From: Podarcis filfolensis | Taxonomy: Eukaryota | Direction: 5' to 3' (one strand) | Assembly (NCBI GenBank): GCA_964270895.1 | Contig: OZ185436.1 | Length of the DNA stretch: 64,000 bases | In this document: positions 1-38,603 of the stretch, piece after piece | Numbering within the stretch: position 1 is the stretch's first letter | Layout of the letters: each line of letters begins with the position of its first letter | Notes under the pieces: generated by a model | What the model was told of the DNA's origin: nothing | The model's input: only the letters and a program-made list of their open reading frames with translations | Databases searched by the model: none | Position numbers and translations under genes: made by a program

Positions 1-19
1 ACAGAACAAAGAAATTGAG

Positions 20-440
20 GAAGCTGCCATATATAGAGGCCTGCCACTGGTCTATCTAGTTCAGTATTATTGTCTATGCTGACCGGCAGCAGCTCTTGAG
101 ATTTTCCAATCAGAGGCTCCCTAGGCTCCCTTACATCCTTGGCAAGGAGCTGTATCACCGCCCCCTGCCCTTTGTGGCCTTGGCAAGCAATGTTGGCTGC
201 CCTAAGCAGCAGAGGAGCAGCTCAGGGAGCGCACAGGCAGGCGTTCCAGCTCCTAGTCACTCCAAGCCAGAATGGAGAGGTATGGTTTTTGTGTCCCTCT
301 GTGCTTGCGCCCTTGGTGGGGCCAACCTGGCTAGCTCCTAGGTACACACCTGTTTCAGGGTCTTTGCCAGCCTTCCCTGGAAATTGAATCTATAACCCTC
401 TACGTGCAAAGCAGATGCTCTACCCATGAGCTATGGGTCC
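20..440 (-). mobile_element. Old tRNA-derived SINE, probably interrupted at about 125-345 by another repeat
   Basis: Reverse A/B-box-like head near 385-437 (gaaattgaatc...gcaaagcagatgctctacccatgagctatgg). The body gaagctgccatatata...ctggtctatctagttcagtatt resembles 6850-7020. Confidence 0.5.
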
Positions 441-1687
441 TTCTCTAAGTAAGCTATTGGCAACAGAGAGGAAGGTGCTGAAGATGCTTAGGTCGATGCA
501 GGTGCTGCAGTGCATTTTGCCTCAAGCACCAAAACGAGACATGTCGTCCCTAGCAGAGGCTAGCCTATGTCGGGTCTTTACTGAGCATTCATTCTGAATT
601 CATCTTGGTTTGCTTGCACAGTGATTATGTGGCTTCCCCTTCATCATTCATTCATCCCACACTTTTCTGTGCATTTCCCTGTCACTTTCCTAACTGCAAA
701 CCCACACCTCTTTTAAAAAGTGGATTTGTTACACAATGGCAACTGAGCTCTTTAATGCAATTTAATCCACTAGGGGGCAGCTCATAAGAACCTGGCAGTG
801 ATTTATATTACAGAAGTGGAGAATTATGAAAAACAACTGGACAACAGCAGCTGCCCAAGGGAGACGATGTTGAGTTTGCAGCTGGTGAAATATATTTATG
901 CAGAGGTGGTAGATAATTAAAGGAGGCTTCTACGCTGCATGGAATTTGCATGTGAATTTAATCATTTCTAAAGCTATAGGAATGAGAGGATGCCAAATAC
1001 TTAAAGATGGGCACATATTATATCACAATTAATGCAGCATTGCTGGTGAGGTTATTCTTCAATCTTTGGCAGGAATGCCCTTGGGTTTCATTATTCTGGT
1101 CCCAAGCACACCAAAAAATAACTAAAATAATTAAATCACCTGTTCAGGCTTCCTAGTAACTGTTATTATTGAATATGTAGATGGACAACATGAGAGCTTG
1201 TTGCTCTAAAGAGCTCCTGACTTGGATGTTAGCTGCAGCTGGGATTTCAATAGCTTAGCAATGGAAAACCTTGAAAAATCTGCATTTGGCTGTGTGGTAT
1301 AAGAACCTATAGAATTTGGCTATGGGGGGGGGGGAATCACACACAAATTGTGAGTTTCCAGGAGGTTGGAGGATCCAGAACATTTCTGTGCCATCTGGTG
1401 GAATTTTATTTCTTATGCTCGATAGTCGCCATCTACGTCCGCTCGGGAATTATCTATTTCTTGATTTATATTGGTGTGTTACCATTTCCTTTTCTTACAA
1501 TTTATTGCTTATCAGCTTTTTATATGGTATGATGCAATGCCCAGCTAATAATGAGGTGCTAATAATGTCAATAAAATTTTGAAAATAATAATAATAATAA
1601 AGATGGACACCTTCCTTCTCTCCCTTCTCGGGGGATATGGGTTGAGTGCCAATCAGCATGAAAGCTCTTTCTGTCACTGGTTCTTAC

Positions 1688-1771
1688 CATCTGTCCACTC
1701 CCAGCACTCAGCTTTTTGCTTCCTTTTGGCCTTCCACGAGGTTTCTTTGGTGGCAATGGCCCAACAGGCTC
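1688..1771 (-). CDS. HMGA-family AT-hook protein, second coding exon: EPVGPLPPKKPRGRPKGSKKLSAGSGQM
   Basis: Acceptor cccttccctatccgaacAG|GAG, donor ATG|GTAAGA, 84 nt, phase 0/0, joining in frame to 5262-5354. It resembles HMGA hook 2 (EPxxxPxPKRPRGRPKGSKNK). As I recall, the equivalent exon is 84 nt in HMGA1 and 87 nt in HMGA2. Confidence 0.9.
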
Positions 1772-2148
1772 CTGTTCGGATAGGGAAGGGGCATTTACTT
1801 GTACAGTGCAGAGCAAAGATCGTGTATTTCACACACATTAAAAGGGCAGCAGCACCAGCACAAAACAAAAGCAACCAGAAATCGAACAGGAATTTTATTA
1901 ACCCAGGTGCTTTTGAGCAACAAGCTCTTTATCAGGACAAACAGTAAGGAGCAGCTCATATCCACTGCAATTTCTTAGATGGATAGCTGCAAAAGGAGGG
2001 ACAGTCCTAACCTACAGTAAGTCTCACTGACTTCAGTGGGGCTTATTCCCCAGTTAAGTGGGGTTATGGTTGCAGCCTAAGTCACACTCAGAGTAGAAAT
2101 CATTTAAGTTCGCTGAGTTAATTGATTGCAATAGGCCTACCCCAAGTA

Positions 2149-2270
2149 TAAGGGTGCCAACTTGAGTAAAATATTGGGGGGTGGGTAGGTAAGCCCTGCC
2201 CCACACAATTGATCAAATATTTTATTGGGCCCCCTGAAGGGACATTGGCCCCTAGGAGTTGGCTTCTATG
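2149..2270. mobile_element. hAT-type MITE
   Basis: Imperfect 14-bp TIRs taagggtgccaact / agttggcttctatg. 8-bp TSD cccaagta (2141-2148) / ctcaagta (2271-2278). Confidence 0.65.
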
Positions 2271-3145
2271 CTCAAGTATGACTTGGATGCAGCCCTTGCA
2301 TTGTGTTTGTCAGAATTCAAATCGGGCCATGCCTTAATCCAAGACAAAATGTTAAGAGTTTTTATCATATAAGCTTAAATAAAATAAAATAGGTATGCGA
2401 TTATGCAAGTGTTTTCATTCTGTGGGAGAATGATGAATGCCCTCCAATGAGAAGAGAGATCTTAACATTATTATTTTTCTTTAAAAAAGGAAGTAGTGGA
2501 TAAATAAAGCTAGTACAAACATCATTAAAGGAGAGGGAGAAAGAATAGCTGTAAATGAACATGGAGTAAAGGTGAAACGAATATTTACAAAGATTAGCAA
2601 TTGTTCCACTTAAATCATGTATAATTTTGAATAAAGATATTTCAAAGTAAAATATTTTGCATATGCCTTTGAATATGTGACATTTGTAACTCATCATGCA
2701 AAACCCAAATGATTAAGAACTCTCGAGTGTTTCAGTTTTGGCAATCCAAAATCTCATAAGCAACCAACTGTCAGCTATTCATTACCATTTCATGTAATCC
2801 ATACAATTCTATGAGATAAAAAGTGACATGCACAGTGACTATAAAACACAAGTACTCATTCTTCGCCAACCATCAAATACTGTCAACCAAAGCAGTGAAT
2901 TGCAAGCCAAGTTCTTGCAATGGTGAGGTGCTTTGGAAGCCTATTAAGAATTTGCTGGTGTGGACTGAGGGCAAATGATATAGCCATGATACTGATGCTA
3001 AGCATCTTTGGATCTGGTTAGTGCCTGGATGGGAGATTTCAAGGGAAACTGCTGTATACTGCCTTAAGTTTCATGGATATAAAGCATGGTATAAATGTTC
3101 TAGATAAAGATTTCCCAATGAGAAAAACAACACCTCGTCCATCAT

Positions 3146-3460
3146 CAGTGTTGGATTTACATATAAGCTAAACAAGCTATAGCTTAGGGCCCCACTATCT
3201 TGGCCCCCCCCCCAAATAATTAAAGTAAAAACAACAACACCTGGATGTACATTTCCAAAATATAAGATAAAAAACAAATAAAATAAAACCTACATACAGA
3301 AAATGGCTTTAGATACCTATTAGGTCCATAAATTGCCATATAGCATATATTCAACACAAAAAACAGTGACAATTTGTTGTTGACAAAGGACAGCTGGACA
3401 TATAAACGGCCCCATTACCTTCAGTAGCTTAGGGCCTCATCAACCCTAAATCCGGCCCTG
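3146..3460 (-). mobile_element. hAT (Tip100-like) MITE, same family as 12436-12759
   Basis: Reverse-complement copy of 12436-12759, with ends cagtgttggatt...aatccggccctg. TSD is not preserved. Confidence 0.75.
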
Positions 3461-3509
3461 TATTGATATTCTACTGTGCGGTACAGCAATAGGGGGACAC
3501 TATGTATAT

Positions 3510-3768
3510 CGGGGTCAGCAAGGTTTATTTTGCCTGGGCCGGATTGGTCCTGCGGAGGTCCCTCCATGGGCTGGATCATGCGCACGACTGCGATTTTTGG
3601 CATCTACGTACGCGATTTTTGACGCCCCAGAAGCGAGTCCCTGCACCACGCTGCGGCGACTTAGCGCAGTGCATGAGCAGGCGGCTTGGTTCGGGGGTGG
3701 CTTGTGGGCTGGTCAAACGACCTCTGCGGGCCTCTTCTGGCCCATGGGCCTTAGGTTGCTGACCCATG
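3510..3768. mobile_element. hAT-Charlie-type MITE
   Basis: TIRs (c)ggggtcagcaa / ttgctgacccatg, decayed 8-bp TSD atgtatat / gtatatat, CpG-rich interior. Confidence 0.6.
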
Positions 3769-5261
3769 GTATATATTCTAGGATGTTCTAACAGTGCATG
3801 ACAGTTAGGTGAATTGTGCTCCATTTGGAGTATGAACTCTAGAGCATGCCCCAGAATCCTTTGCAACATGGAGCAGTTCCTTGGCAGGTATAGAAAGTGT
3901 TCCCTGAAAAAAAATAATGAAAACCCCTGCTATATACTAAGTGTAGCAATGCTGTCAGATATTTAAAGACTACTATCCAAATGCTTCAGTGTATCAACTC
4001 ACAAATATCGAGAGAACATTTGAGTGACCAGGAAACTTCAAGAGAGTATTTGACATGGATATTTGCAAAAGAGAATTCTGAGGAGAATGTTGTGAGAACA
4101 ACTTCATTTTCATTCCAAGATGGGGCAAGAGCAGTGCAAATGTTGTTGAGCATCACTGGTAAATTTCAGTTCCCTTTAAAAACAGGTTTATGGTGAGAAA
4201 AGAAATTTCCCAGGGCATACAGGTCAGCAGATAAACAAACATATGTCACCCTCCACCTAGAATTGAGTCATTGATGTTGCACATCAAAATGTTTAGGGTC
4301 ATTTTGGCAGTCCAGTATTATTCAGAATTCAATCCCTAATTTTGTCTCACCGTGTTAACCCTCACAGTCTCCTCCCTCCTCAAAGTGCACCAGCATTGGC
4401 AAGCCTGAAGAAACCCAGGGAGACCAGGGAGCTGGGATATAGTCCCACTCTTGCTGGTGGCACTGGCAGGGTCTTGCAGACCTGGAGTTCCTGACTGGGA
4501 GTTGCTCTGACTGCTCAGGCCAGGGACAAACAGCACCAAAAATTGGTGGCACTACAGCTGCCATTCATATGTTAAACTGTACAAGTTTGCTCACAAAGCA
4601 ATTGCCCTGCCAACTGAGATGCATTTATGTGCATTTCAATCTGACTGCAAGCCAGGTTAAGATGCCACCCAGACTTCCCCAACCTGGTGCCCTCTAGATG
4701 CTTTCAACTACAACTTGCACCAACCCCAGTCGCACAAAGTCCAATTCCTGGTTTCAAGAAGGAATGGGGGTTGGAGACATCTCCAGACCTTTTGGCCTTC
4801 CCTTTCTAATCTTCAGCCAATCTCTCAAGGTAAGGAGACCCCCTTTTTACATAAGATGTGCCCCTTCACATGCTTGTGAAGGTGGCCCCAGCTGTCTCAA
4901 CCATACTCAGTATTAGCAGCTGATCCTGAAGAAATGAATCATGCTCCTCTTTGAAGCTGTAAGATATTCTGCTAGATATGCCTTTCCCAGTTTAGCGAAG
5001 GTGAACAATCAACCAGTCACTCACTTAACAGTAGACAGGTTAATTTCTTGCCTAGTAGAATGTCTTGCCTAGTAGAAAAAAGAGCCCTTGAACCCAAACA
5101 TTAGAGCTTTCTGGACATGCTGAACTGTTTTGAGGTGGGTCACACCTAAGTTTAGTCATTCTAATAATACCACTTTCTTTATGTCTAAAAAACTGTCACC
5201 AGCTTCCTTCTTATAAATCTTAACATGGTGAGAAGGCAAAGCGCCGAGGCTGAACACTTAC

Positions 5262-5354
5262 CTGCGGCTGCTTCCTCGGCCGTCCCCTCTTTCGTTTGGG
5301 CAGCTCGGTCGGAACAGTGGACCCTGGTCCTGCCTGCTTCCCAGTGTTGCTCAT
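5262..5354 (-). CDS. HMGA-family (HMGI-C-like) AT-hook protein, first coding exon: MSNTGKQAGPGSTVPTELPKRKRGRPRKQPQ
   Basis: ATG at 5354-5352 in the context gccgctATG. 31 open codons contain AT-hook KRKRGRPRK and end ...RKQPQ, like the first coding exon of HMGA1/HMGA2. Canonical donor CAG|GTAAGT at 5261-5256, phase 0. Absent from the supplied ORF track because it is spliced. Confidence 0.9.
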
Positions 5355-5412
5355 AGCGGCACTTCAGCAGTCTCTGGAGATGATCAGCCAATGGTTTTTC
5401 CCACGCTGCAGC
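5355..5412 (-). other. 5' UTR part of the first coding exon of the HMGA-like gene
   Basis: Pyrimidine tract and acceptor ttcactcctgttcctttaaAAG|G at 5413-5414, 58 nt upstream of the ATG. An alternative CAG acceptor lies at 5406-5407. Confidence 0.5.
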
Positions 5413-6054
5413 CTTTTAAAGGAACAGGAGTGAACAATCCCACTTCTACCCTGCTTGTTCTCAGCTGTACGCTGCAGAAGGAGGAATGCAGGCACATCTG
5501 ACAGAGCACTCCCCTCGAGGCTTTTAATACCCCACCGGAAGAATCTTAGGACAAAGTATCATCATGTTCTCCCACCTTTTCCTTCCATCCTCAGCGAGTC
5601 CCAAAGTCTTTATGGAGGCCCTCAACAGCTCCTATCTGTGGGTTGTGTTAGCTCCAAAGGGCTCAGGGATGTTCTCCTGCACGGCTCCCACGGAAGGCTC
5701 CACACAGCAACTTACCATAAATGATGGAGGAACCAACTGGAGGTAGCCAATTCAGTGGGGTTTATGCAGAAGAACTTTTCAGCTCTGTGCAACTCAGGCT
5801 AGTGGCCAAATATTCAACAAAAATAAGCTTCCTCCCCAAGGAAGATAGAGAAAAGCATCTGAAAGAGGAGGGTATACTAGGCAGGATCACCTGCAGCATT
5901 TTAACACTATTTCTTGTCCCTCCCTCTGTACCAAAGATTCATTAAGAGAATCATCTGAGCAGCAAAGGTGACTTCCCAGTTTCTTTTAACAGGCAATCCA
6001 CATGTGCATTTTAGATACAGACCCAGAAAGGTGATGAAGAAAGAGGAAGCTTAC

Positions 6055-6200
6055 CTGTCAAGAACTTAGATAGCACAACTTGCTCTGGCCGCAGTACACT
6101 CAGACACCTAAGGAAGGGAGCGGGGAGTAGAGAAAGAGTGGTTCAGTGAGTCACCCTTTTCCTGCTCGGGGTGGGGAGGGGTGGGGAGGTGGATCGCTAG
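6055..6200 (-). promoter_or_regulatory. Putative non-coding first exon and promoter of the HMGA-like gene (upstream boundary uncertain)
   Basis: Strong minus-strand donor CAG|GTAAGC at 6054-6049, AP-1 site TGAGTCA at 6147-6153, and four G runs at 6168-6186. HMGA1 also has non-coding 5' exons. Confidence 0.4.
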
Positions 6201-6815
6201 TTTTGAGAGCTACGTATGTTCATTTCAGGAGCCTCACTCTTCACAATGCCTGTCTGCAGTTCACTCCTGGTTAGTGATTTGGAAAGCAGGTTGAGTGCTG
6301 CTGCCTATGTTCTAGTGATGGCAGTCTTGAGCTGTGGCAGCAAGTGAAACTTGAAAACGTTCACTTTTTAACTCAGCTAGACTCAGACAGGGAGGGAAAC
6401 CCCACCAACCCAACCAGAAAGCACTGGTTCTCTCAGCTTCCCCATTTACTACAAATAAAACCAATTTCCTAAAGAGCGAGCAAGAGGGATCTGAACAGAG
6501 AGGACATAACGTTTTTACGCAGCAGCAGCGAAAAGAGGGTGATTCCAAGCATCGTGACCTTGTTTCTCTAAAACTTCTTTCTCATATGAAGAAATGAAAC
6601 GTACACTGGGTTTGAGATGAGGCAGAGTGGTTCTAGGTCTGCATGCAAAACTCTTTGGGGCTTTTGTCATACGTCAGCCTTCACAGTGACACACAGGACT
6701 GGAAACTTACCCAGATTAGAATTAAGTAGGCACAGCTAGGGATTTAAACTAAGGTCAGGCCTGCAACACAGATGCCTGAGTTTCTAGTCGGCCACTGATG
6801 TGAGCAAGTAGAAGC

Positions 6816-7184
6816 ACAAGAAAGAGAGCACTCGCTTCTCCCCAAAGAGCATGTGAAGCTGTCTTATACTGAGTAAGACTAGTTAAACCTGCAGTCCTGT
6901 TTTCCTATCTCTCCAGGGACTCAATCAGAGGTCATTTGCTACAGGAGGCTTTCCACTGTAGAAGCCAGGAATTGAACCTGGGAACTTCTAATACAAAGCT
7001 TGTGCTCTTCCACTGAGCCATGAAAGGTCATTCCATAAGAGAAAAGTCCTGCCTTTTAGTTTTTTGGATGGACCTGCTTACAAAGTGCAAGGACAACATC
7101 TGTTATCCTAGGTAAAGGTAGTCTTACTCAGTATAAGACAGCTTCACATGCTCTTTGGGGAGAAGCGAGTGCTCTCTTTCTTGT
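6816..7184. repeat. Perfect 66-bp inverted repeat (arms 6816-6881 and 7119-7184)
   Basis: The arms are exact reverse complements over 66 nt, with a 237-bp spacer. Confidence 0.95.
6850..7022 (-). mobile_element. Old tRNA-derived SINE fragment
   Basis: Reverse B-box ccaggaattgaacc and A-box ccactgagcc at about 6964-7020. Same family as 20-440. Confidence 0.5.
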
Positions 7185-7525
7185 AAAGGGATCCCTGACC
7201 ATTAGGTCCAGTTGTGACCGACTCTGGGGTTGCGGCGCTCATCTCGCTTTATTGGCCGAGGGAGCCGGCATACAGCTTCTGGGTCATGTGACCAGCACGA
7301 CTAAGCCACTTCTGACGAACCAGAGCAGTGCATGGAAATGCCGTTTACCTTCCCTCCGGAGCGGTACCTATTTATCTACTTGCTCTTTGACATGCTTTCG
7401 AACTGCTAGGTTGGTAGGAGCAGGGGCCGAGCAACAGCAGCTCACCCTGTCGCGGGGATTCGAACTGCCGACATTCTGATCAGCAAGCCCAAGGCTCAGT
7501 GGTTTAACCCACAGCACCACCCACC
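7111..7525 (-). mobile_element. Sauria SINE with a 66-bp templated insertion in its (ACCTTT)n tail
   Basis: Full body homologous to 13024-13377 in reverse. The tail reads ggtaaagg...gtaaaggg around the insertion. Probable TSD ttatccta (7103-7110) / ttatccca (7526-7533). Confidence 0.9.
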
Positions 7526-9291
7526 TTATCCCAGCATGTACCAAATAGCTACACATCACTGCTAATATTTCACCCCTAAGTCTATTGATGATGTTTTACT
7601 CTGTTAAAGAGTGAGGCCGTAAGTAGACTTGCTTCCCCCTAAGAGAGGAAATAGATGCCCTGCTTAGGATCCGCTGGATCCAGATGCAGACAAAAAGAAA
7701 GAGTCAGTAAGTGTGTGTGAAACATATGAATTCTTCACCCCAAAGCAGAAAGATCTGCCTTATAGATCTGGGGTTCTCGGCAACAGCTGGGGAGTGAGTC
7801 TGGTTTAAGCGTTAACAGCATATAAAAACCTACAGTGTTGTAAAAATAGTCTCACCCAGCAGGAGCTGAGGAGGGTGGGAAAGCCGCTCAAAGTCACACA
7901 GGCGGGAAGTCATCTATCTTTGTGAAATACAACAGTTAAGACACTTAGATGGGTCCTTCCAAACTCAGTGTGGTCTTTATTTCATTCCACATCCTCAGCA
8001 AAAACCAACAACCCTGTGGCCTGTGGTAGTAGGATTTCCAGTCTTTGCAGACTGTACTGGAAACAATGACGGCTTCCTGATTTCACTCACACCAAGTGAT
8101 TTATGGCTGCACACCACATTTTGCAGAAGAGAATGTTTTCAAGTTATTACTCTCTGAACCTGTGCAGATAAGGAATGCAAAGAGGACCTCTCCAGAACAC
8201 AGAAAGCCAGGTGCAGAGGCTAGATTAGCTAGGCTAGATGAATATATGTATCTGGAGATGCTGGTAGACAGGGTGAACATGGAGCCAGAGGCAGCGCTAC
8301 TCATGTACCCAGTTACCCCAGGTTCTCATGGGATTAATATTCTCTCTCTCTCTCCACTCATATCGAGACTTATTTGGTCACTCAAATGAAATTAATCTTG
8401 TGATGTGAATCAGAATCCCTGTATCAGCACTCATCATATCACAAACATCTTTTCAAAATACACTAAGATTATTCTGGGAGATCCCAGATCAAGAACGGGG
8501 AACACACACACTATAATATGAATCCTTGCCTTGCTGAGGTCCCACGGCAAAGCTCACAAAACTCTTTGCAAAGAATCATTGAGGGGCTGTAAGGGTATGG
8601 GAGCCCCCTTCTTTATTAAATAGACCTTCTGTTACATCCACATGACCAAATTAAACACCCTCTCCCTCAACATTAACAAACCAAGTAAGAAATCTAAATT
8701 AGAAGAAATCATTTGAATCACTTTCTGCAGACAGTTTTGGGGGACTGATTACGACTTGCAACAGCTCTGTTTCATGGAACACAGATTTCTTTTGAGCTTT
8801 AGACATTTTCTAGATTGCACGTTTGCCAGATTCAACTAACCGGTCCTGCGGGTGGAAGCCAACTGGCACAATGGGGAGTCTGCCCCTCTTCCCTAATTGC
8901 TCCCTCGCCAATTGGCTCAGGGGGTCAGGAGAATCCCCAGAGCAGTATGCAAAGAGAGGAGAAGGGAGATTGTTCCATCGGGCTGTTCTCAAATGGCTGA
9001 ATAGGTATAATACAGAATAGGGTTCCTGTCTCTGTTGACAGCTGTGTAGATAGAAGAAGGTTAGATATGTCAGGAGTGCTGAATTTCCCCTTTCTACATA
9101 ACTTTTAAAGGTGCAGCAATCCTGACCTCCTTTGCATCCTATTCTTTCTTCTTCTGGGATGTGATGGGACATACCCCACAACTCCCTTGTCTTAAATGAG
9201 CTGGCAAAGGCACCATTTCCCTCTTGGGAAGCACCTGGTCGGGCATGCTGCCCTTTACGTCCCCCCAAATCCCTGCCTTTCATATGCTATA

Positions 9292-9516
9292 CAGTGATAC
9301 CTCAGGTTAAGTACTTAATTCGTTCTGGAGGTTCATTCTTAACCTGAAGCACCACTTTAGCTAATGGGGCCTCCTGCTGCTGCCGTGCCGCCGGAGCATG
9401 ATTTCTGTTCTCATCCTGAAGCAAAGTTCTTAACCTGAGGTACTATTTCTGGGTTAGCGGAGTCTGTAACCTGAAGCGTATGTAACCTGAAGCGTATGTA
9501 ACCCGAGGTACCACTG
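9292..9516. mobile_element. pogo/Tigger-type (Tc1-mariner) MITE
   Basis: TIRs cagtgatacctcaggtta / taacccgaggtaccactg, TA TSD on both sides. Other copies at 34112, 38604 and 44107. Confidence 0.9.
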
Positions 9517-9849
9517 TAATGTTTTTGCTTATCTGTTCAGAATGTTTTGGGACAAACTGATCAGAGCAAAAAGTTGACAAGATATTTCTTTGCTATCTGC
9601 ATTTGCAACTATGAGAATGGGCACATCAAAAATTAAATGGTTACGTTCTAAGGTGCAGGAGTGGGGAAACTCTGGTGTTGGGACTCGAGTTCCCATCAGC
9701 CCTAGCCAGCACTGCCAATGATCATGTATGATGGGAGCCAGAGTCCAGCAACAGATGGAGGGTTAAAGGTCTCCCATCCTTCCTCTGTGGGTTTAAACTG
9801 TTTTGTGGCATCTGACTTGAGGGCCCAGATGAAGGTGAATTTTCCAATT

Positions 9850-10420
9850 AAGTACTGAATGAGGTTTGCAGGAAAAGTTAATTCCATTGTAGAAAATGGA
9901 AATAAGGAATAAATTCCTGATAGCTGAAGAGATTCCAGATAGCTTGTGGCAGCAATTATGGTAGGCATATATGAAATCATCCTTGTGTATCAATTTGTTG
10001 GGGAATTACTATACATTGTTAACATGCTGGTTTGTAAGACGAAGGAGATGAAAGTAGAGCTGTCTTGGTGCTGGCTCTTCTTGTGGGTGACATAATCAAG
10101 AAAGTGGGAATCAGGTTTTCTAGATGAGAATTATTGCAAAACATTCCAAGACAGCAAGGATCTTTGCTCCATTACACCCTCAAAATATAATTTTTGGATG
10201 TTTTAATGAGTTAGGTATGAAACAGGAAACAGTTTCACTTAGTAACAGCAGCAATATGTTTAATTGCTCATTACTGGGGAAGAAAGAGGTGCCATCTATT
10301 CATGTGTGTGGAAATAAGTGGTGGCGCATGATTAGTTGTTTCAAGTTAACTCATTATGTTTGGTATAGAGAAAAATAAAGAAGATTAGAAATTGGCATTT
10401 GCTTAACAAGTTTTTTCCGT
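9850..10420 (+). mobile_element. Highly decayed L1/Tx1-like ORF2 3' fragment
   Basis: Broken translations EIPDSLWQQLW..KSSLCIN and PLHPQNIIFG..KKEVPSI..KWW resemble the C-terminus of the L1 at 19505-20586. Confidence 0.35.
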
Positions 10421-10869
10421 ATTGGAGTAAAAATAGTGGTAATGTGGATAATGAAGATGAACTAAATGTACTGAATTGAATTATATTGAGGAAATAAGAG
10501 TTGAATATTTGCCAAACTGATATATTTATTACTGACACTGTATATTCATTATTTTGCATGCAATATACCATTTTCCCCAGTACATTTATTAAAGAAAAAT
10601 GAAGGTTTGGGGATGGAAGATCTGATCCCTATCTTTAGGGTAAGATGGAATAGTTCACCTCCAAATGATGTGATTTTCAAATGGGAATTTGTTCTGTTGA
10701 GGTATGAGGAAAGGGAAAATTGGGGTATTGTTGTTTATTTTAAGCATTTTTCAACCCTCATTTTCAGTCAACCAACTTTACAGATGAAATCCACCAAATT
10801 AGAATAAATAATGAAATTCCAAGGAACTAAAATAACATGATGCTGGATTCTGTGGACATGACTAAGTCA

Positions 10870-11170
10870 GCACAGATGTTGCTGACACAAATAGAAGCCA
10901 ACTCCTAGAGTCCAAGGCCCCTTCGGCCCTTGCAATAAAATATTTTGAAAGGGTACCCCCTCCCCAGTTAATAGGCATTGCCGTTCAAATGGTGTGCGTG
11001 TGCCACATCTTGTGTGGAAGAACACATCCATGAGTGAGACTCTATCCTGCTGTTTAATACCCAAATTCTTCCCCATGCAGCACGTTGAGGCGTCACTCCT
11101 GATGGTTGTTAAGTTGCCCACAACTCACTTCCACAAAGCAGTGTGCTCAACACACAAGCCCGGTAGACTT
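10870..11170 (-). mobile_element. Decayed RTE-clade LINE, ORF C-terminal fragment
   Basis: Minus-strand translation ACVLSTLLCGSELWAT...LGIKQQDRVS matches the RTE motif ACVLSTLLYGSE.W...ILGI.WQDRV. Confidence 0.6.
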
Positions 11171-12435
11171 TTATCATGAAACGTAGTGTAAAATTGACTT
11201 ACAAAAATCTTAAATGCAAGAGTGACTCATGGAAGAAGAAAACAAAAGTAAAAGGCAAACAAAATACTGATTTCTGATTTTTTTTAAATTCGGGATGAGG
11301 GGGTGGATGGAATAGCCAACAAACATTATAGCAGTGAATGAAATACTCCAATTGTCCATGGGGTGGTGCCCTTCCATCACATATATTAGAGGGGTTTTCT
11401 GTCTCTGCACTTTCCACTCGAATAGTGACAAATATAAACACAACCACGTCATCTTTACATTCCCCTGGTGAAAGCGGCTGCATTTTGCAATGGGGTTAAT
11501 TTATTCCTAGGGTTCCTGTCTGGCTGAGTTTTAAAATGGCATAGCTTTTATTATTATTTTAATTATGTACAATCCACATCTGGGTGATGGTGGTGATTTG
11601 GTATATATTTAGTGACCGAGCACATACAAATGGGTAATAGTCTTCTTTTTTATATGATGACCCTAGCTGAAATATTCACAGAATATCCTGAGCACAGATA
11701 ATTGGCTGCTGGGGGATGGTTAGTATTCACAGGTATTTCTCATATCTTGACCACAGCATCCATTGACAAGATACATAGAACATGTGCTCTCTATAATATT
11801 GGACGTGCACCCTGAATGTTCCCCCTATCCCAGGAGGGGGGAAGGCAGCAGGAGCAGAAGAAAGTTGATTCACAAAACCGCTCCCACACCTGTGTTCACC
11901 TGACTGTGTGTGAAGTGCAGGGGCTGCGGCGCGGAATCACACTGCAATTCAAAGGAAGGATACATACCTTTTTGTAAGGGGATGCAATGTGTGATGCAGA
12001 GCCAAACACCTCCTATGGTAACTCCTAGGACTACTGTCAGATCTAGTCCCTAGCCTTCAGAAACTGTCCAAATACTCAGTACCTTCAGACTGTTACCCAT
12101 CATGCTTGGGCACTGCCAATGGTTAGAAGCAACTGCAGCATGTTCATCAGCCTTTTGATAGCAATAGCCTAGGGGATTTCACTTCCAGCATCTTCCCTGG
12201 CTCTTCATCCTCCTGGGCAAATTGTTTGCACAGTAAAGGTTTGGCCTGAAGATGCAGTCTGACCCCACCTTCCTTGCTGGTCTACCCCCCAGTACTACCT
12301 TGATGGCCATGTGTGGGCCAATTTCACATGCACCCATTTGAAGGAGGAGATAGGAGGAGACGTTTGTGCATACCAGCCAATCAGGGACAGCGGTGCTTAT
12401 TGAAGGTAGATAATCCCTCTCCTAAAACTCAGCTA

Positions 12436-12759
12436 CAGGGCCGGATTTAGGTTTGATGAGGCCCTAAGCTACTGAAGGTAATGGGGCCCTTTCTATGTCC
12501 AGCTGTCCTTTGTCAACAACAATTTGTTGCTGTGTTGAATATATGCTACATGGTAGTTTATGGCCCTAATAGGTATCTAAAGCCATTTGCACATAACAAA
12601 ATATGTATTTTATCAAAGTAATTGTTGAACTGAAATGCAATTAAGAAGAAGTATATTAATAGTGAAATACAATTAAGAAGAAGTATATTTTTGGGGGGCC
12701 TCCAAGAGAGTGGCGCCCTAAGCTATAGCTTGTTTAGCTTGTACGTAAATCCAGCACTG
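12436..12759 (+). mobile_element. hAT (Tip100-like) MITE
   Basis: TIRs cagggccggattt / aaatccagcactg. 8-bp TSD ctcagcta / ctcagctc. Confidence 0.85.
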
Positions 12760-13023
12760 CTCAGCTCTCAGTGCAGTGACAGCCCACCTGCCCACCTGAC
12801 CTCTTTCATGTCCTCTGCTCTGTCACGTAGCATGAGTTTGCTAATGGGTTCTATTTGGCCTTGCCATTAAATAAATTACAAGTGGCAGGTTCAGTGCAGG
12901 TCGGGGGAAAATACAGAAGCATCAGAGTGGTGAAAGGATATTTACACACTGTTTACTGACTTGGGGGGGGGATTTGGGGGCAGGGAGCTAGTCCTCAAAG
13001 CTTATTGGCATGGGACTGATGAC

Positions 13024-13377
13024 TGAGAAGCAGGTGGCGCTGTGGTCTAAACCACAGAGCCTAGGGCTTGCCGATCAGAAGGTGGGTGGTTCAAATCCCC
13101 GCGACGGGGTGAGCTCCCATTGCTCGGTCCCTGCTCCTGCCAAACTAGCAGTTCGAAAGCACGTCAAAGTGCACGTAGATAAATAGATACCACCTGGGCG
13201 GGAAGGTAAACGGTGTTTCCGTGTGCTGCTCTGGTTCACCAGAAACGACTTATTCATGCTGGCCACGTGACCCGGAAGCTGTACGCCGGCTCCCTCGACC
13301 AGTAAAGCAAGATGAGCGTCACAACCCCAGAGTTGTCCGCGACTGAACCTAATGGTCAGGGATCCCTTTACCTTTAC
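13024..13377 (+). mobile_element. Sauria SINE, near full length
   Basis: Head ggtggcgctgtggtctaaacc...ggttcaaatccc, BovB-like 3' part and (ACCTTT)n tail. Flanked by a duplication of about 70 bp. Confidence 0.92.
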
Positions 13378-13449
13378 TGGCTTGGGGGGGATTTGAGGGC
13401 AGGGAGCTAGTCCTCAAAGCTTATTGGCATGGGACTGATGACAGTGGTG

Positions 13450-13830
13450 GACTTCGGGCTTCAGTAGTGCCCTGTGCAACACCAAAATTCTGTCACTCAA
13501 CTTCTGTTGTTCATCATTTTTGTGGCATCCCCTGTAATATCCTCTTGGCTTGGTGCCCAGTGCAGGTGAACCAGTCATGCTCCCCTAAATCTGCATCTGC
13601 TACTGATGCTGGTGGGACACCCTCCCACCCCTTTAGGTGCTGTGATCCAGTGCTTGAAGGCAGGGTGGATTTGAGAAACAAGGAGAGATGGCCTAGCTCT
13701 CACCTTCATGATAAGTTGTCTGCTTTGACTAGTAGTTAAGCTGCAAATCAGACAAGCAATACAACGAAGTTGTGAATCCAATTCCACCTTCATTCCAAGG
13801 ACAAGCCTTGCCTCACCTTTTGAATAGTCC
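13450..13830 (-). mobile_element. Possible ancient RTE endonuclease fragment
   Basis: Minus-strand QLRCIACLICSL... loosely resembles the RTE APE start (LRIASWNVRTL). Same strand as the RTE fragment at 10870-11170. Confidence 0.3.
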
Positions 13831-14548
13831 ACTGGTGTACAACCTGCTCCCTGTCTTCTGGATTAAGCCTTGGTCACACCTTTAGCCTCTTAGAGTTGAC
13901 ACCTTGCCCTGGAAAAGAAAATATATATACTCATTTACACAGGCTTGCGATGCCCCTGAGATGAGGCATGCTAGTATGGGATTTGCTGCAGCTGCAGGTG
14001 TTGATCTGGCTTGGCCCCAAGGTGCTTGGCCCAGCATCCTGTTCACGCAGGGTTTGTGGAGGAGGTTTTGCAGCCAATGGTGTGTGCTTAATCCCCAATG
14101 AAGGCTTCCAGCTGGGGCCCAGTGGAATGATGCTTCTAAGCAGTGCTGGGATATAATCCTTCTCCATGTCACTCCTTCTGCATACTAGTTTGCACAGAGT
14201 CCAGCAACAGAATGAAGATTTTATGCTTGCTGCATAAAAGCTGTGCGAACAAGTCTAGCACCTGCACAGATGGTGGATCTTGTATATATAGCTTATTTGA
14301 AAACAGCTGCATTGGCCATCCATGTACAATTCAAGATGCTGGCTTTCACTTATAAAACCTTGCAGAGACTGGGGCCTGAATTCTATTTTTAAAATGTTGA
14401 TCATGGGTTGTTGTTTTTTGTGGGGACGGGCAACTTTCAATAACTCCTGAACCACCATAACAAACACTTTATTTTGAGCTGTACGTTTTAAAGAATAAAA
14501 TAAAACTAGGGAAAGAGAGCCACAAACTGTCTTTGTGTATTCATAATA

Positions 14549-15203
14549 CAGTGGTACCTTGGTTCTCAAGCGCCTTGGTACTCAAATGCCTTGGTTCCCA
14601 AACGCTGAAAACCCGGAAGTTAGTCTTCCGGTTTTCAAATGTTTTTCGGAAGCTGAACATCCGATGCTGTTGTGAGCTATTGTTTCTGGGGTGCCTGCAC
14701 CAATCAGAGGTTGTGCCTTGGTTTTTGAACATTTCAGAAGTCAAACAGACTGCTGGAACAGATTAAGTTTGGCGCTTTTGTTTTTGCTATTTATTTTGCG
14801 TTTGTGTTTTTGAGGCTTAATTTGTTTTTGTGACTGTGTGGAACCCAGTTCAGCTACTGATTGATTGATTGTGTGACTGTGGAAATGGATAAAAGCCTCC
14901 CATCCAAACAATGACTACCATCAGTGCAGGTAAGAAAAAAATAATAATTTATTTTTTATCATCTACGATATTGTCTTATTTATTTTATAGTACAGTACAT
15001 TGATTTCATTTTATGGATCAATGGTCTCGTTAGATAGTAAAATTCATGTTAAATTGCTGTTTTAGGGTTTTTTTAAAAAAGTATGGAACGGATTAATCCA
15101 TTTTGCATTACTTTCTATGGGAAAACACACCTTCGTTTTAGAACGCTTTGGTTTTGGAACGGACTTCTGGAATGGATTAAGTTTGAAAACCAAGGTGCCA
15201 CTG
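14549..15203. mobile_element. Non-autonomous pogo/Tigger-type DNA transposon
   Basis: TIRs cagtggtaccttggtt / aaccaaggtgccactg, TA TSDs at 14547-14548 and 15204-15205, no ORF. Confidence 0.88.
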
Positions 15204-15628
15204 TACCTTGGCAAGTAGGATAGTTTAGGCTGAAGCTTCCTTCAGGTGGGGGTGAGGTTGACTGTGAAAAGGAGAGGAATATTTTTCCTTTTTTTAAAGT
15301 CGTGCAGTTAGCAGCAAGTTGACATGCAGACATTTACAAGGTGAAACTGCTCCTGGCACGGCAAATCAGCACTGGATTAAAGCTTTGCCTAGTAGATGTC
15401 CATCAAGTCACTGTTTAAGAAACAGGAGCAGGGCCATTAAAAATGTAAGGCGACCTTCTTCTATGCACCTTGGGATGCCAGAGATGCTGCAGAGCTGCTC
15501 TGAAGAGTATTTTGCCTCAGCATGTTCCAAGAGGACCCCTGGAGACAGAGCAGATCCCTCTGGAGATTGGCAGAACAACCCCATACTCGCTTTGCATGTG
15601 ACTGGGAGTGGGGTGGAGAAGTGCCATC

Positions 15629-16860
15629 CAGGGCCAGATTAAGACATTTAGAGGCCCCCAGCTCTGGAAATATGATGGTACCAGCCATACGTAATGCAAA
15701 ATAAAGATGACACTAAACCATAAAATAAAAAATATATTTTTTTGAACTGACACCAAGCTTACATGTATGCTGAAAATACAAAAGCTTCTTTTGAAATTTT
15801 CTGATTGCAAAATTCTGGATAAGTTCATCAAACCGACTTGATGAAGCATTTCCGCTTCCATGAACAGGAGGAAAAGTGAATCAAGTCTGTCCTGACACAT
15901 TGTTGTTCTCCGAGGATTATTATTTCTACTTCTACTTCTACTTCTACTTCTACTTCTACTTCTACTTCTACTTCTACTTCTACTTCTACTTCTACTTCTT
16001 CTTTTCAGCTCAGAAAAAAGAGGGCTGTGTGGAATATTTAGTAAGCATCAACGCTAGGAAAGTATGTAGTGTGGTCTCTGCATATGGACATACACATTGT
16101 ATTCTGTCTTTCACAATTGTGTCATATAGCTCAATGTGACTGCATTTTTCTCTATTTCATTAGATTTTGGGCACATGTAACAGCAGAACTGCTATACTGC
16201 TCTACAGAGATTCCTGTTCAAGACAAGAGCGTATGAGTCAGCTAGCTTTTGAGGACCTTGTGCATATTGTTCATCAGATAAGTCTATATTGTTTAGAAAA
16301 GAATCTACTTGATACTTCTTCGTATGCTTCACCATATTATCCATACTTTAGCTTCAGGTGTGTCAAATATGGTGTAGTCAGTATACACATAATTTATCTC
16401 TGAGATTCAGTGCTGTTTCTGGTGCGCTGCCATCATTTGCATTTTTTTCCTGATTCGCTTGTAGGACTGGGCTTCTTTGTAGTCAATATCAGGAAGATTG
16501 CTTTTTGATATGTCTTCAAATCTTTTGAGATCGTTCCTCAAAGTGTGCAAGTGCTCTGCTAATGACTGGCAGAGGTCTGCACATGTTTGCAAGTCCAATT
16601 CTTCTTCTCGGAGAGCTTGTCTTGTGCAATAAAAGCACTGCAGAATTTCAGTCCATGGGGTCAACATGAACACAAACTAGCTCTTGCATCTTGTTTGCAG
16701 TGCTTTCCGCCTCTCATACAGTTTCTCCCTCTTGTAATTGATCTTCAGCTATACTATCTAATGCACCCACAATCTTTGAGCAGGACTGCACTTGTTGCCA
16801 TGTGCCTCCCAGAGAGAGATTTCAACCCTGAAGTAGAGTGTAAGGAAATTTAACAAACTC
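15629..16860 (-). pseudogene. Decayed hAT transposase (C-terminal half with hATC dimerisation domain) and one terminus
   Basis: A frameshift-bridged minus translation gives LKSLS..IVGALDSIAED..FVFML.PWTEILQ..EELDLQTCADLCQSLAEHLHTLRNDLKRFE..YKRIRKK..GEAYEEVSSRF..CPYAETTLHTFLALM..FSELK..NPRRTTMCQDRLDSLFLL. This fits the hAT motifs FPN..LRIFLT..ERSFS.LK and TM.Q.RL. TIR-like cagggccagattaag at 15629. Confidence 0.85.
15924..15995. repeat. (TTCTAC)12 microsatellite
   Basis: 12 perfect units, lying inside the hATC-coding part of the transposase relic. Confidence 0.95.
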
Positions 16861-17534
16861 TTTATTTTCCCTGTGGTGGCTTCTTCAGTGCTTTTCAAAT
16901 GAAATCCTTTCACATCTATCACATCACATCTCTTTCTTCCATTGAAGTCAATAGGGAGGGTTTTTGGTGTGCTGGGTCTGGGGACAGCTGTGCTATCCAC
17001 ACTTCCTGTGTTGCCTATGCCCTGTGCATGACTCTGCCCCATTCCAGCCATTCTGTCATGTTGCTTGGCCAGTGGAACATCTACACTGGCATCAGCATGT
17101 TCTGACAGCATAGCTGTTTTGGTGGCAGAGTACCTGGTGTTGCACTCATGTGGCAGCGGTTTCACTGAATGCTATGGCATCTCAGCTAGGTCATCTAGAA
17201 TACAGGACTGTGCCTTATGCCTTCTAGTTGCTGAAGGACAAAATACACTAGGGACTTACACTCTATAATTCATCAGATTATGCTAATACCTTGGAGGCCA
17301 AAGTCCGTGAATTGATGTTGTTGTTCATGCCTGCTAATAGTTTAGGGAGCTGCTGCATCTCTGCCAAAGAGAAGGGATCTGTGACTCTTCTTGGTTCTTG
17401 TTTGCTAGTGAAGCCAGTGGATGCATCTGGAATTCTGAATTGCCACAGTTAGCGCATTGACCTTGCCTGACAAGGTTCTACCATAATCTCCTGTTTGATG
17501 GGCATCAGCTGTACTGGATTGAATGGCTTTAGAG

Positions 17535-19504: not shown

Positions 19505-20951
19505 TTGAGAACACGGACATTTTGGATCTGGAAGGTTTTAATAATGTTTTTGGGTGGCATGCATACTTGTGGTATGACAAGGTCAAAGCGCATAAATCGT
19601 TTAAAAACCATATTGTCAGGAAAGCACTGTTTAATGTGTGGATAAGATATAAGGATTTGCTTGAAAACAAAACCCCAAGGTGGTTGTCACCAATGGAAGT
19701 TAAGGCCCTAAAAAAACTCAATATGGAGGCAAATTGGCTGAAGTATTGGGAAATTTTGGAACAAGAAGGAGACAGATTAAAACTGCAGAGCTTTGACAAA
19801 TTAAAAAACAAAGTACGAGACTGGCTTCATTATTATCAAATAAGGGAGATATATAATTTGGAAAAAAAAATTGGTTTCCAGGTGGAAAAATCAAAATTGG
19901 AAACAGAATTGTTAGAACCTAAAACTAAGAATTTGTCAAGAATGTATAACTTGCTGTTGAAATGGAACACACAGGATGAAACGGTGAAATCTGTTATGAT
20001 TAAATGGGCACAGAATGTTGGACACAACATTATGTTTGCTGACTGGGAACAGTTATGGACCACAGGTATGAAGTTTACGGCATGTAATACCTTAAGAGAG
20101 AATATAATGAAAATGATTTACAGGTGGTACATGACTCCAGTCAAGCTTGCAAAAATTTATCACCTGCCCGATAATAAATGTTGGAAATGTAAAGAGATTG
20201 AAGGTACCTTTTTTCACCTTTGGTGGACATGCCCAAAGATTAAGACCTTTTGGGAGATGATTTATAATGAAATGAAGAAGGTATTTAAATATACCTTCCA
20301 GAAGAAACCAGAGGCCTTTCTCTTGGGCATGGTCGGCCAGTTGGTGTTAAAAGAGGATAGAACTTTCTTTATGTATGCCATAACAGCAGCAAGAATACTT
20401 ATCGCAAAGTACTGGAAAACACAAGATCTGCCCACCCGGGAAGAATGGCAGATGAAGGTGATGGATTACATGGAATTGACTGAGATGACTGGCAGAATCT
20501 GAGACCAAGGAGAAGAGTCGGTGGAAGAAGAGTGGAAGAAATTTAAAGTTTATCTACAGAAATATTGTAAAATTAAGGAATGTTAGAAAGATGTTGGAAT
20601 AAAACTATGTGGTTTTAGCAGAAAAGATATAAAGGATTAAGTAAAAATGAATTGTTAACAGGTGGAAATGTAAAGTTACAATATATTAAGATAAAATATT
20701 AAGATAAAAGCAAAAAGGGTAAGGACTTGCTGAAACAACTACTGAACTAGAATACAAAAAAGGGAGGTGTGAGGAGGTCAGGGAAACAAGCAAATGAAAG
20801 ATAAGACATGGAAAGACTGATTTGTTTTTAATTGTTTTTCATTTTTCTGTATTTTGTATTTTTTGTATTTTGTATTTTTTCTTTTCTTTTTTCTATTTTT
20901 GTAATTTCTTTGAAACTTTAATAAATATTATTCAAAAAAAAGAAGGAAAAA
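19505..20951 (+). mobile_element. 5'-truncated L1-clade LINE (ORF2 C-terminus, 3' UTR, poly-A)
   Basis: Open frame 19522-20502 contains the CWKC..H..W.C zinc motif. The in-frame TGA at 20500 is probably a CGA>TGA change, and the frame continues to TAG at 20584-20586. AATAAA and an A-rich tail follow. 16-bp TSD aaagagggcacctctc at 19489-19504 and 20952-20967. Confidence 0.95.
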
Positions 20952-35297: not shown

Positions 35298-38082
35298 GAT
35301 CTCTTTGGTGATAGACTCTTAGGGCGAGTGGTTATCCCACATGAAGGCTTTCAAGGAGGCCGCTGCCGCTGCCACCACCAATGAAGGTGTTTGTGGCAGG
35401 CAGCAGCTGCCCAGAGCTTTCATTCTAAAGCCAAAGCTGCTTGTGAGGAGGCTGTCAGGCCGAGGAGTGTGGCAGTGGGAAGGCAAGAGGCACGTTTGCA
35501 ACCCAACACACACTGTATGCTGCATCCAAGTTACATAGCAGGGTTGGCTAATGTGTGCCCCTCCCCCCGATTTGCTGAACTCCAGTTTCCCTGAAAGTTG
35601 GCTATGCTGACTGGAGATGAAGGGAGCTGGAGTACAACTGGAAGGCACTAGGTCTCCCACTCCTGTTAGACATGGTGGAGTAGCGGGCAACTTGCTGCAC
35701 TTCAACTATGCCAGAAAACCAGATTCAAAGGCTGCTGAGCCATGAAGCTCATTGAGTGACTCTGAGTTAATCTCCATCTCATAGCCTGGCCTACCTCCCA
35801 AGGTTGTTGTGATTATACTGTTGTTGTTGTTGTTGTTGTTGTGGATCTATCTGCCTTGCCATAAGCTCCTTATGGGCCCTGAGCTCATTGCAGGAATGGT
35901 GGGGTAAAATTATGCATCAATGTAAGCAAATCAGAGCAAATAGATAGGATTCTAAGAATTGATTTGCTTTAGCTGAGATTTCTACATTGCAGGGGGTTGG
36001 ACTAGATGACCCTTCCAACTCCAAGATTCTATGATCATAACAGGAGGAACTTTGCCAACTTCCATTGAAAATACTGAAGCAGGCAGACAGTGGCTTCTAA
36101 CTGCTATGGAAATCAGAACAATTCAGGGGGAGAAATACTATTAAGACAAAGCTATCTGTAACTGATTGCCTTTGGATACTAAATTCCGTCCCAGAAGACT
36201 GAGCTGTCCTTATCTGACACTTTTCTTAAAAGACTTGAACTCACTTATTAATTTAGTGAAAGCGCTTTCATTTTGATGCATTGTCTGAGTTAATTGATTT
36301 GCTATCAATAACTTGCATTGATTAGGCCTCCAGATCTGGCAGCTGCTAAAGACCAAATGATGCGCATGCACACTCATGCTTGCTTTCAGAGCAGGAGTTC
36401 AAAAGACCAAAATAATTTAAAAACCAGAGGGCAACTTCAAAATGACTGCAAAAAGGTAGATGTCAATTTGTTCCCAGGTGAGGAGGATAAAAGAGCTATG
36501 CATAATTATCTCTGAATACAAATAGGTTGACCCAGCATTGTTAGATAAACTGAAAATTTATTTTGTTATACCAACGTCACTTCACTTCTTTTACAAAATG
36601 AATCCTTCTGTTCCTAGGGTTGCATACCAGAAATTTACATTCACACAATATTTGGATTAAAGCACTCTGTCACCCTAGCTCAACAAATCCACTTTAAAAA
36701 ATGACTCTTTGTAGTTAGGAAAATGATAGGCCGATGCATTGAGAAGCGTGGGATAAATGGGTGATTAATAGGAAGACAAGCATCTCATAAACAAATCAGA
36801 ATGAATAGTCAGTGCCATGAAACCGCCATACAATCAAATCAGAACAATTACTTGATAAAGTCCAGACATTAGGCTGCATACACAACTTACATTTAAAGCA
36901 CATGACTTCCTCCAAATGACAATGGGAACTGTAGTTTACCCTTCATAGAGCTGCAGTTCCCAGCAGCCTTAACAAACTACAGTTCCCAGGATTCTTTGGA
37001 GGGGCACCATGTGCTTTCAATGCACCGTGTCAGTGTGTAAGCAACATGTGCGCTTTGCAGAAGCAAATCAGGACAAACGCTGAATAAATTGGTCATCTGG
37101 AAGAGCCCTGCGTCTTTAATAGCAGTCTGACAAGCAGAGATTTAGTGGGTACAGCTCAGTAAAAACAAAAAGTGGTGGCAAAAGCTTTGCCGGCTAAAAT
37201 CCTACATCAGATTGCTGTTAAATGCACTGGAACATAGCCACCATGGTAAGTGACACACACAGCTTTATCAAGCACTGCTGATGTGAAGTGTTAACTGCGG
37301 TCGGTGGAAGGGCAGAGCTCAGGCGTAGAGCACATGCTTTGCAGGCAAAAAGACCCAGGTTTAATCCCCAGCCCCAAATCCCTGAAAGCCGCTACAAGGG
37401 CGCATCCACACTTCCGCTTGTCCCACCGCTTTGCCTCAGGCAAACCCGCTCTTTACCACCAAATTGGAGCAAACGTCAATTTGGTTTCCTGCAGCGGGGT
37501 CAAACAGAAAACCACTCAGACCCATGCCTAGAAAGCAGAAAACCTTCCAGACCCATGCCTTCTAGGCAAAGTATGGACAAGTCCCAAGTCAACGTAATGC
37601 TTAGCTAGATAAACCAATGGCCTAAGGCAGTCTTGTATGTTTAAAAGGAGAGGGCTAAGGGCAGTTTCAAACACGGCTAGTGAAAAACCCTGCTGTGCAG
37701 TTGCGCTTCACTTACCATTGTGCATCCATGTCAACCTCAAGAATCAAGATTGCCAGGTTTTCAACCAGAGATAGCACGTGTCCCTTTAAACGAGGGGTGG
37801 AGAACCCTGTAGCTCTCCATGTATTTCTGAAGTACAACATCAGCCGTTCTTCACCATTGGCCATGCTGGCTGGAACTGATGGAAGTTGCAGTCCCACAAT
37901 ATCTGGAAGGCTACAGGTTCAAAACTCTGTGGTCACAAGGAAGCAGCAGGAAGGAAATGTGGTCACAAGGAAGCACAAGGAAGCAACTTCATTTATTCTT
38001 TTGCATCTTTTTTACCTGTTGTTAGTCGCTCTGAGCCCGGCTTTGGCTGGGGAGGGCGGGATACAAATAAATAATAATAATA

Positions 38083-38120
<38 letters not shown>

Positions 38121-38603
38121 CCGTTGGTTGGATAATAACAAGGAATAATACTGTCCCCCTGTCCTCTGCTGGGCTGCAACCTTCTCAGAGCAGTTTATAG
38201 CAACAAAAGATGTGTACAATAAAATGTAGGGAGGTTACCTTTCCTAACAGGGCTCCTGACAGCTCCATGACAAGAAGTAACTAACTGAGGGGATGGAGAG
38301 CAGGGCTCCACTAGCTCAGCTGAGAGACCAGTGCTATTTGGTTTCTCCTTTCCTTGAACCATTTCCATTCAGACAGGTCATTGTAAGAACTTTGCAACAT
38401 TAGAATCTTCCCTCATCATCCATTTTTCCTTTTATTTCCTTATTTCATTTCTTTAAGATCATAAGCTTGTGGATGGGGAGTGTCTAGCTTGTTGCTGATG
38501 TTATGCAAGACCCCTTTGGGCTGAAATGTGGAGTAATAATGCATAACATAAATAATGAACTCAAATAGGTGCAACATTGAAATGCTGACTTCACACCCCC
38601 CTA

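Follow-up and report, generated by a model that had tools for sequence, protein, structure and literature searches.

A 64-kb stretch of the Podarcis filfolensis genome (the window, to whose positions all coordinates refer) carries on its minus strand two short exons that a preliminary description, made from the letters alone, had proposed to belong to a divergent member of the HMGA family. Both exons are genuine; they open the coding sequence of the lizard's copy of a third HMGA gene. That the locus is the start of a gene separate from both HMGA1 and HMGA2 is a conclusion that we hold with considerable confidence. The features of this gene that fall within the window are, in the order of transcription:

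About 6381-6055, minus strand: putative non-coding first exon (5′-untranslated region, UTR), both ends predicted
5471-5262, minus strand: full ATG exon, its 5′ end at 5471 predicted
5354-5262, minus strand: coding exon A, the coding part of the ATG exon (93 nucleotides (nt), 31 codons, starting with ATG)
5297-5271, minus strand: AT-hook 1, with its R-G-R-P core inside exon A
1772-5261, minus strand: intron between exons A and B (3490 nt, GT..AG ends, high-copy repeats inside)
1771-1688, minus strand: coding exon B, the second coding exon (84 nt, 28 codons)
1750-1712, minus strand: AT-hook 2, with its R-G-R-P core inside exon B
1-1687, minus strand: beginning of the intron that follows exon B, the exons of hook 3 and of the tail being placed outside the window, to its left

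An in-frame stop lies three codons 5′ of the ATG of exon A, which ends at a GTAAGT donor; exon B is bordered by a pyrimidine-rich acceptor ending in CAG and by a GTAAGA donor. The exon A/B junction and the donor of exon B are both in phase 0, and each exon encodes one AT-hook. In a six-frame translation of the 64 kb, six matches to [RKP]GRP occur; the cores of these hooks are the sole RGRP sequences among them and the only ones in a basic hook context. The 13-residue AT_hook model of Pfam scores 15.9 bits on exon A, just below its cut-off of 17.4, and does not match exon B alone. The exons by themselves are thus only suggestive, and the decisive evidence was taken from the orthologues of relatives.

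At the putative first exon, a block of approximately 90-110 nt has 77-79% identity with the DNA located approximately 6 kb upstream of the ATG in pigeon and alligator. Its conserved core is window 6350-6264, which is matched by positions 32-118, within the 5′-UTR exon, of a bird transcript contig (L009), and a candidate donor (CAG/GTAAGC) is present at 6055/6054. The position 5471 was chosen because a pyrimidine tract and a CAG (5474-5472) precede it, by analogy with pigeon, in which the ATG exon begins 125 nt before the ATG. The comparison suggests a three-exon model for the window (about 6381-6055, 5471-5262 and 1771-1688), with predicted outer boundaries. The intron between exons A and B is 94% identical to that of Lacerta agilis in aligned columns, with many insertions and deletions. 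Since introns are present, the gene is not a retrocopy, in agreement with the preliminary description. Contig depth is very high in every genomic run at 2001-2400, 3001-3800, 4601-4800 and 401-800, with a summed depth that reaches about 5x10^5 at 3201-3400, unique sequence having about 35-60. These blocks in the HMGA intron and just downstream of exon B are high-copy interspersed repeats, probably short interspersed nuclear elements.

A search with the stop-to-stop frame around exon B (window 1571-1828, minus strand; residues 14-53 scored) matched 30 proteins, nearly all of them squamate and bird entries named “high mobility group protein HMGI-C-like,” the label under which, according to the preliminary description, databases might already list the gene; identity to these proteins is 67-94%. 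At the DNA level, exon B is 76-77% identical to the pigeon and alligator exon. The L. agilis protein P0001 (137 amino acids (aa), “HMGI-C-like”) and the Zootoca vivipara protein P0002 both start with the two exons of the window, each sharing 57 of 59 residues with them. Window 1-16688 is colinear with the L. agilis locus L003 over 16.7 kb at 87-93% nucleotide identity, window position 1 corresponding to position 14633 of L003. The last two Lacerta coding exons, at 17442-17531 and 19030-19128 of L003, consequently lie to the left of the window. The preliminary description had suggested looking in that direction for the missing exons, and these two are there, but the hook-3 exon is unmapped in L003 and is placed left of the window only because 1-1687 contains no RGRP in any of its frames.

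Compared with L. agilis, exon A differs at 4 of 93 nt, three of them at third codon positions, and exon B at 3 of 84, two of them at third positions. The resulting five third-position and two replacement differences in 177 coding nt would fit purifying selection, although the sample is small. The locus is also retained in closely related genomes, as judged from the sequencing runs that hold it. One run from a related species (X4) has a single A>T change (plus strand) at window 1710 in exon B, which as read replaces Leu by Gln, a residue also present at that site in Sceloporus; no further difference in the coding exons was found among the rows listed for this run, 328 more rows standing beyond these.

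Separate canonical HMGA1 and HMGA2 genes, the lack of which would speak against an additional paralogue, are present in genomes of the same genus and family. The Zootoca record with canonical HMGA2 is 72 Mb long and that with the third gene 123.6 Mb, and in Podarcis muralis both HMGA2 (P0086) and HMGA1 (P0281) are on chromosomes other than that of the third gene. The HMGA2 proteins of Zootoca and Podarcis are of the canonical MSARGEG type, and Podarcis HMGA1 is 90% identical to alligator HMGA1. Erythrolamprus, Paroedura and Columba likewise each have all three HMGA genes, on three different records. The proposal of a separate HMGA paralogue is thus borne out in lacertids and in other sauropsids.

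The third gene is annotated in squamates, turtles, Alligator, kiwi (a palaeognath), galliforms, Neoaves, passerines and echidna, and two caecilian “HMGI-C-like” proteins group with its members and, from their sequences, are probably orthologues. Conservation among squamates had been anticipated and is found, but the gene is not special to them: it occurs in all sauropsid groups, in echidna, probably in caecilians, and in teleosts as “hmga2b.” When 1.84 billion representatives were searched exhaustively with a profile, seven matches fell below 1e-30, and the six with named sources are from sauropsids or echidna. The echidna copy (P0081, 142 aa; CM027599.1, 21.33 Mb, locus L002) is diverged; its N-terminus carries a long extension and its tail is mildly acidic. 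Since it is a syntenic copy, the suggested loss of the gene does not extend to all mammals; for therians, no copy was seen among the annotated proteins. In addition, an extra “HMGI-C-like” protein is present in whale shark, elephant shark, coelacanth and paddlefish; its linker has Gly-Pro and its hooks 2 and 3 are 26-27 residues apart. The database labels for the third gene are “HMGI-C-like” in tetrapods and “hmga2b” in teleosts (NCBI).

In the Lacerta orthologue, each of the three AT-hooks has its own exon, hook 3 is followed immediately by a Trp, and the tail is not acidic; the full-length orthologue of this type scores 27.1 bits with Pfam AT_hook against the cut-off of 17.4. The Lacerta protein therefore has the three hooks and the length of approximately 100-140 aa of an HMGA protein (two hooks being in the window, and the third hook and the 137 aa in Lacerta). 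Exons with one hook each and phase-0 junctions, as in the HMGA family, are found in the window, in pigeon and in the exons of several species. In an alignment of 20 third-gene members (A1), the three hooks are invariant, hook 3 is directly followed by Trp, and the Ser/Thr-rich tail is conserved. All of the signatures found in the window exons are conserved in it as well: KRKRGRP in hook 1, G-P-L-P in the linker, and “SGQM” terminating the hook-2 exon. The acidic C-terminal tail of the HMGA family is not found in the sauropsid orthologues (for the window, as read from L. agilis). The net charge of sauropsid tails is -5 to +4, with +1 to +4 in the last 25 residues, and that of the mildly acidic echidna tail is -4, with -3 in the last 25 residues, whereas the charge is -6 to -12 in the tails of HMGA1 and HMGA2 and -6 to -11 in those of teleost hmga2b. 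As judged from sequence, a conserved Ser/Thr-rich tail, neutral to slightly basic, replaces the acidic tail in the amniote copies, the lizard case being known via Lacerta. Because it lacks the acidic tail, the gene is classified here as a divergent, tail-less member of the HMGA family and not as a canonical one.

The third gene can be compared with the known HMGA genes. Like HMGA2, it has three AT-hooks, one per exon, phase-0 junctions, five coding exons, “RKQPQ/EP” at the first junction (slash) and a Trp directly after hook 3, the latter being a hallmark of Hmga2-type proteins (PMC7013770); in the archosaur and turtle copies, the exon after hook 3 also starts with PQ as in HMGA2. On the other hand, the third gene has a different chromosome, different neighbors (C3orf18) and a different N-terminus. 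Its hook 1 is KRKRGRP against KRGRGRP in HMGA2, its linker between hooks 1 and 2 has Gly-Pro against Gly-Glu, the spacing of hooks 2 and 3 is 26 residues against 28, exon 4 is about 90 nt against 33 nt, and the amniote copies lack the acidic tail. The bird 3′-UTRs of the third gene contain no let-7 seed match, unlike HMGA2, a classic let-7 target; one let-7 7-mer occurs in the 3 kb downstream of the Lacerta stop. HMGA1 resembles the third gene in AT-hooks 1 and 2 and in size, and, as the preliminary description noted, 84 nt is also the length of its second coding exon. However, hook 3 of HMGA1 is “RGRPKK” without Trp, against “RGRPRKW” in the third-gene orthologue, its tail is strongly acidic, and it is a separate gene, with its own clade, in Podarcis and other squamates. 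The teleost gene named hmga2b by NCBI (in Pimephales, Eleginops, Brienomyrus and others) shares the convergent C3orf18, the Gly-Pro linker and the hook 2-hook 3 spacing of 26-27 residues with the third gene and is most likely its fish orthologue. Unlike the amniote copies, it keeps the acidic tail and a 33-nt fourth exon, and its sequence is far closer to HMGA2 than that of the third gene is.

In the loci of pigeon (L001), of echidna (L002) and of the sand lizard (L003), the third gene is followed at 5-9 kb by a C3orf18 homologue (PF27898) that lies tail-to-tail with it. A convergent C3orf18 is also located downstream of hmga2b of Pimephales (L006) and Eleginops (L008), within the same 5-9 kb. 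Upstream of hmga2b in both fish is a PAN/Kringle/Trypsin gene of the MST1/HGF type. For the window, the C3orf18 neighbor is seen in the colinear Lacerta locus L003, the window itself stopping short of that point; a tblastx comparison with the two fish flanks found no MST1-like coding sequence in the window. By their names, C3orf18 and MST1 are genes of human 3p21.31, and human HMGA1 and HMGA2 are at 6p21 and 12q14. As read from the gene names and this human map, the C3orf18(/MST1) neighborhood is neither that of HMGA1 nor that of HMGA2. With this neighborhood in common (C3orf18, and the MST1-like gene in fish), unlike those of HMGA1 and HMGA2, hmga2b of teleosts and the “HMGI-C-like” gene of tetrapods most likely represent one old gene, the shared neighborhood being the main evidence, and the split between HMGA2 and the third gene most likely predates the divergence of ray-finned and lobe-finned fishes, and hence of fish and tetrapods. 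An origin as an ohnologue from the early vertebrate genome duplications would fit this age. Such an origin had been put forward as a possibility and is plausible, but it is not demonstrated because the trees do not resolve at that depth.

The trees are based on about 80 alignable columns. HMGA1 forms a clade with support of 100/100, and the amniote third-gene clade, echidna included, has 99/91, or 94/91 when caecilians are added. Teleost HMGI-C joins tetrapod HMGA2 (83/73), with teleost hmga2b outside this group. Forcing all sequences of the C3orf18 type into one clade costs only 1.35 log-likelihood units (approximately unbiased (AU) test, p 0.39), and forcing a teleost-only duplication of hmga2a and hmga2b costs 23.4 units (AU test, p 0.077). 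The trees are thus compatible with the reading from synteny, although they are weak and give no proof of it.

On balance, we lean slightly toward a scenario in which jawed vertebrates ancestrally possessed three HMGA genes. As “HMGA3,” linked to C3orf18/MST1 and by these gene names syntenic with human 3p21.31, the third of them would have arisen as an ohnologue of HMGA2, survived from sharks to monotremes and been lost in therians; its acidic tail would have been exchanged for a conserved neutral or basic one in the stem from tetrapods to amniotes, and it would have gone unrecognized in the HMGA literature. Several observations weigh against the main reading of the locus as an old third HMGA gene. 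The fish hmga2b-type sequences fall in a polytomy and are not joined to the tetrapod clade, and since the trees leave them apart, the deep orthology rests on two or three neighboring genes. C3orf18 is not found within 10 kb downstream in the alligator and caecilian loci, nor within 10 kb in the paddlefish locus, in which the matches are low-complexity noise. The strong matches of the profile search, which cover annotated proteins only, include no therian copy. Hook 3 and the tail lie outside the window and are read from the Lacerta orthologue, and no transcript of this lizard was found in the runs that hold the locus.

The best surviving alternative is that the tetrapod gene is a younger duplicate of HMGA2, arisen in the tetrapod or amniote stem, that teleost hmga2b is an unrelated, independent duplicate, and that the gene is not an ancient ohnologue. 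Hook 3, with its Trp, indeed resembles HMGA2 closely, as does the exon that follows it in archosaurs and turtles, which starts with “PQ..VVQ”; the separate position of fish hmga2b in the trees agrees with two origins, and the AU test does not significantly reject a teleost-only duplication. However, two independent copies would both have had to come to lie convergently beside C3orf18, at about 4-9 kb. Moreover, teleost HMGI-C groups with tetrapod HMGA2 to the exclusion of hmga2b, the forced teleost clade is costly in likelihood, an extra “HMGI-C-like” protein is also present in whale shark and coelacanth, and the third gene and fish hmga2b have in common a hook 2-hook 3 spacing of 26-27 residues, that of HMGA2 being 28. 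We therefore regard a younger duplication as improbable and the ancient third gene as the better explanation.

Good evidence for expression comes from birds. Three Logan contigs (SRR31060320, SRR27537750 and SRR27537642), each with an uninterrupted open reading frame (ORF), define six exons on the pigeon locus, one non-coding first exon and five coding exons. They join the coding exons exactly at the junctions homologous to those of the window, as had been proposed for its two phase-0 exons. The galliform transcripts L010 (SRR27537750) and L011 (SRR27537642) use an earlier donor in the hook-2 exon, by which nine residues are lost after “GSKK”; this shorter isoform (P0066) has 124 aa against 133 aa in guineafowl P0050. 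Among the runs that hold the lizard locus, X1, which was guessed to be RNA, has a 225-nt contig over exon B and both of its intron flanks and leaves exon A uncovered; since it carries intron flanks and skips exon A, it represents DNA or unspliced RNA. The remaining runs are genomic, from the source species and close relatives. Thus, the gene might be silent or decaying in this species, its two exons being intact by chance, an idea that draws on the missing transcript evidence for this genome and on the fact that the window shows just two of about five coding exons. Against it, the ORFs and splice sites of both exons are intact, replacement changes relative to Lacerta are fewer than silent ones, closely related genomes retain the locus, and the gene has remained intact over more than 300 million years of sauropsid evolution and is transcribed in birds; we consider such decay very unlikely.

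That the locus is simply the lizard's own HMGA2 or HMGA1 orthologue with a diverged N-terminus can be dismissed almost with certainty: the layout of hook 1, “RKQPQ/EP” and hook 2 is that of HMGA2, and the Anolis carolinensis member bears the NCBI name “HMGI-C” with no “-like,” but assignment to the HMGA2 group is rejected by the canonical MSARGEG-type HMGA2 on another chromosome in Zootoca and Podarcis, by the C3orf18 neighbor and by an HMGA2 clade proper that excludes the third gene, and assignment to the HMGA1 group is rejected by the “RGRPRKW” of hook 3, the position outside the 100/100 HMGA1 clade and the separate HMGA1 of Podarcis.

In the rest of the window, no protein-coding neighbor was recognized from 5.4 to 64 kb. 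A reverse-transcriptase fragment (Pfam RVT_1, E-value 3.8e-23) followed by an ORF of 115 aa occupies 61028-62106, and a near-identical 97-aa copy of that ORF is present at 43135-43428; the two look like 3′ ends of one family of long interspersed nuclear elements (LINEs). The alligator locus L004 matches window 61272-62182 at 65%. An ORF of 326 aa at 19522-20502 has no Pfam match and, by eye, resembles the C-terminal part of LINE ORF2. Simple AT-rich trinucleotide microsatellites are located at 37680-38135 and at about 1590-1610, and one such microsatellite translates as runs of N and Y.

A literature search, which did not reach subscription papers, found nothing on the third gene; its matches to “hmga2b” were rejected, as they concerned a human splice variant and Xenopus hmga2-beta or were a footnote mark. 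A review from 2020 counts two vertebrate HMGA genes, Hmga1 and Hmga2 (PMC7013770). The locus itself had already been annotated automatically, and the novelty is the recognition of a distinct, ancient family member.

By homology, the third protein would be a small, disordered, architectural chromatin protein of the nucleus. HMGA proteins remodel chromatin or enhanceosomes through hooks that bind AT-rich DNA in its minor groove (PMC7013770), and the three hooks of the third protein would be expected to insert into AT-rich minor grooves in the same manner. Because the acidic tail, a regulatory module of HMGA1 and HMGA2, is absent, the tail-mediated self-inhibition and the CK2 regulation of those two proteins would be lacking. 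The absence of let-7 seed matches from the bird 3′-UTRs may indicate an escape from let-7 control of the HMGA2 type. Truncated HMGA2 keeps DNA binding, has altered partner interactions and has a stronger transforming output (PMC13638997). The third protein is like the C-terminally truncated HMGA2 of human mesenchymal tumors in having three hooks and no acidic tail; unlike that product of somatic rearrangement, it is encoded in the germ line and has a different, conserved tail. It is tempting to speculate that the amniote protein is a constitutively “open” HMGA, like a naturally truncated HMGA2, that would be regulated through its own Ser/Thr-rich tail, but this functional parallel is drawn purely by inference.

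HMGA1 and HMGA2 have been studied heavily in relation to growth, body size, the beak size of finches, stem cells and cancer. If a third conserved paralogue exists, the results of knock-out and association studies in chicken, lizard, zebrafish and other non-therian models would have to be read differently, because redundancy is possible, and the third gene would represent a clean case of gene loss in therians. Furthermore, the amniote form lacks the acidic tail, the loss of which activates HMGA2 in tumors, and it would thus offer a natural experiment on the function of the tail and a natural counterpart of oncogenic, tail-less HMGA2.

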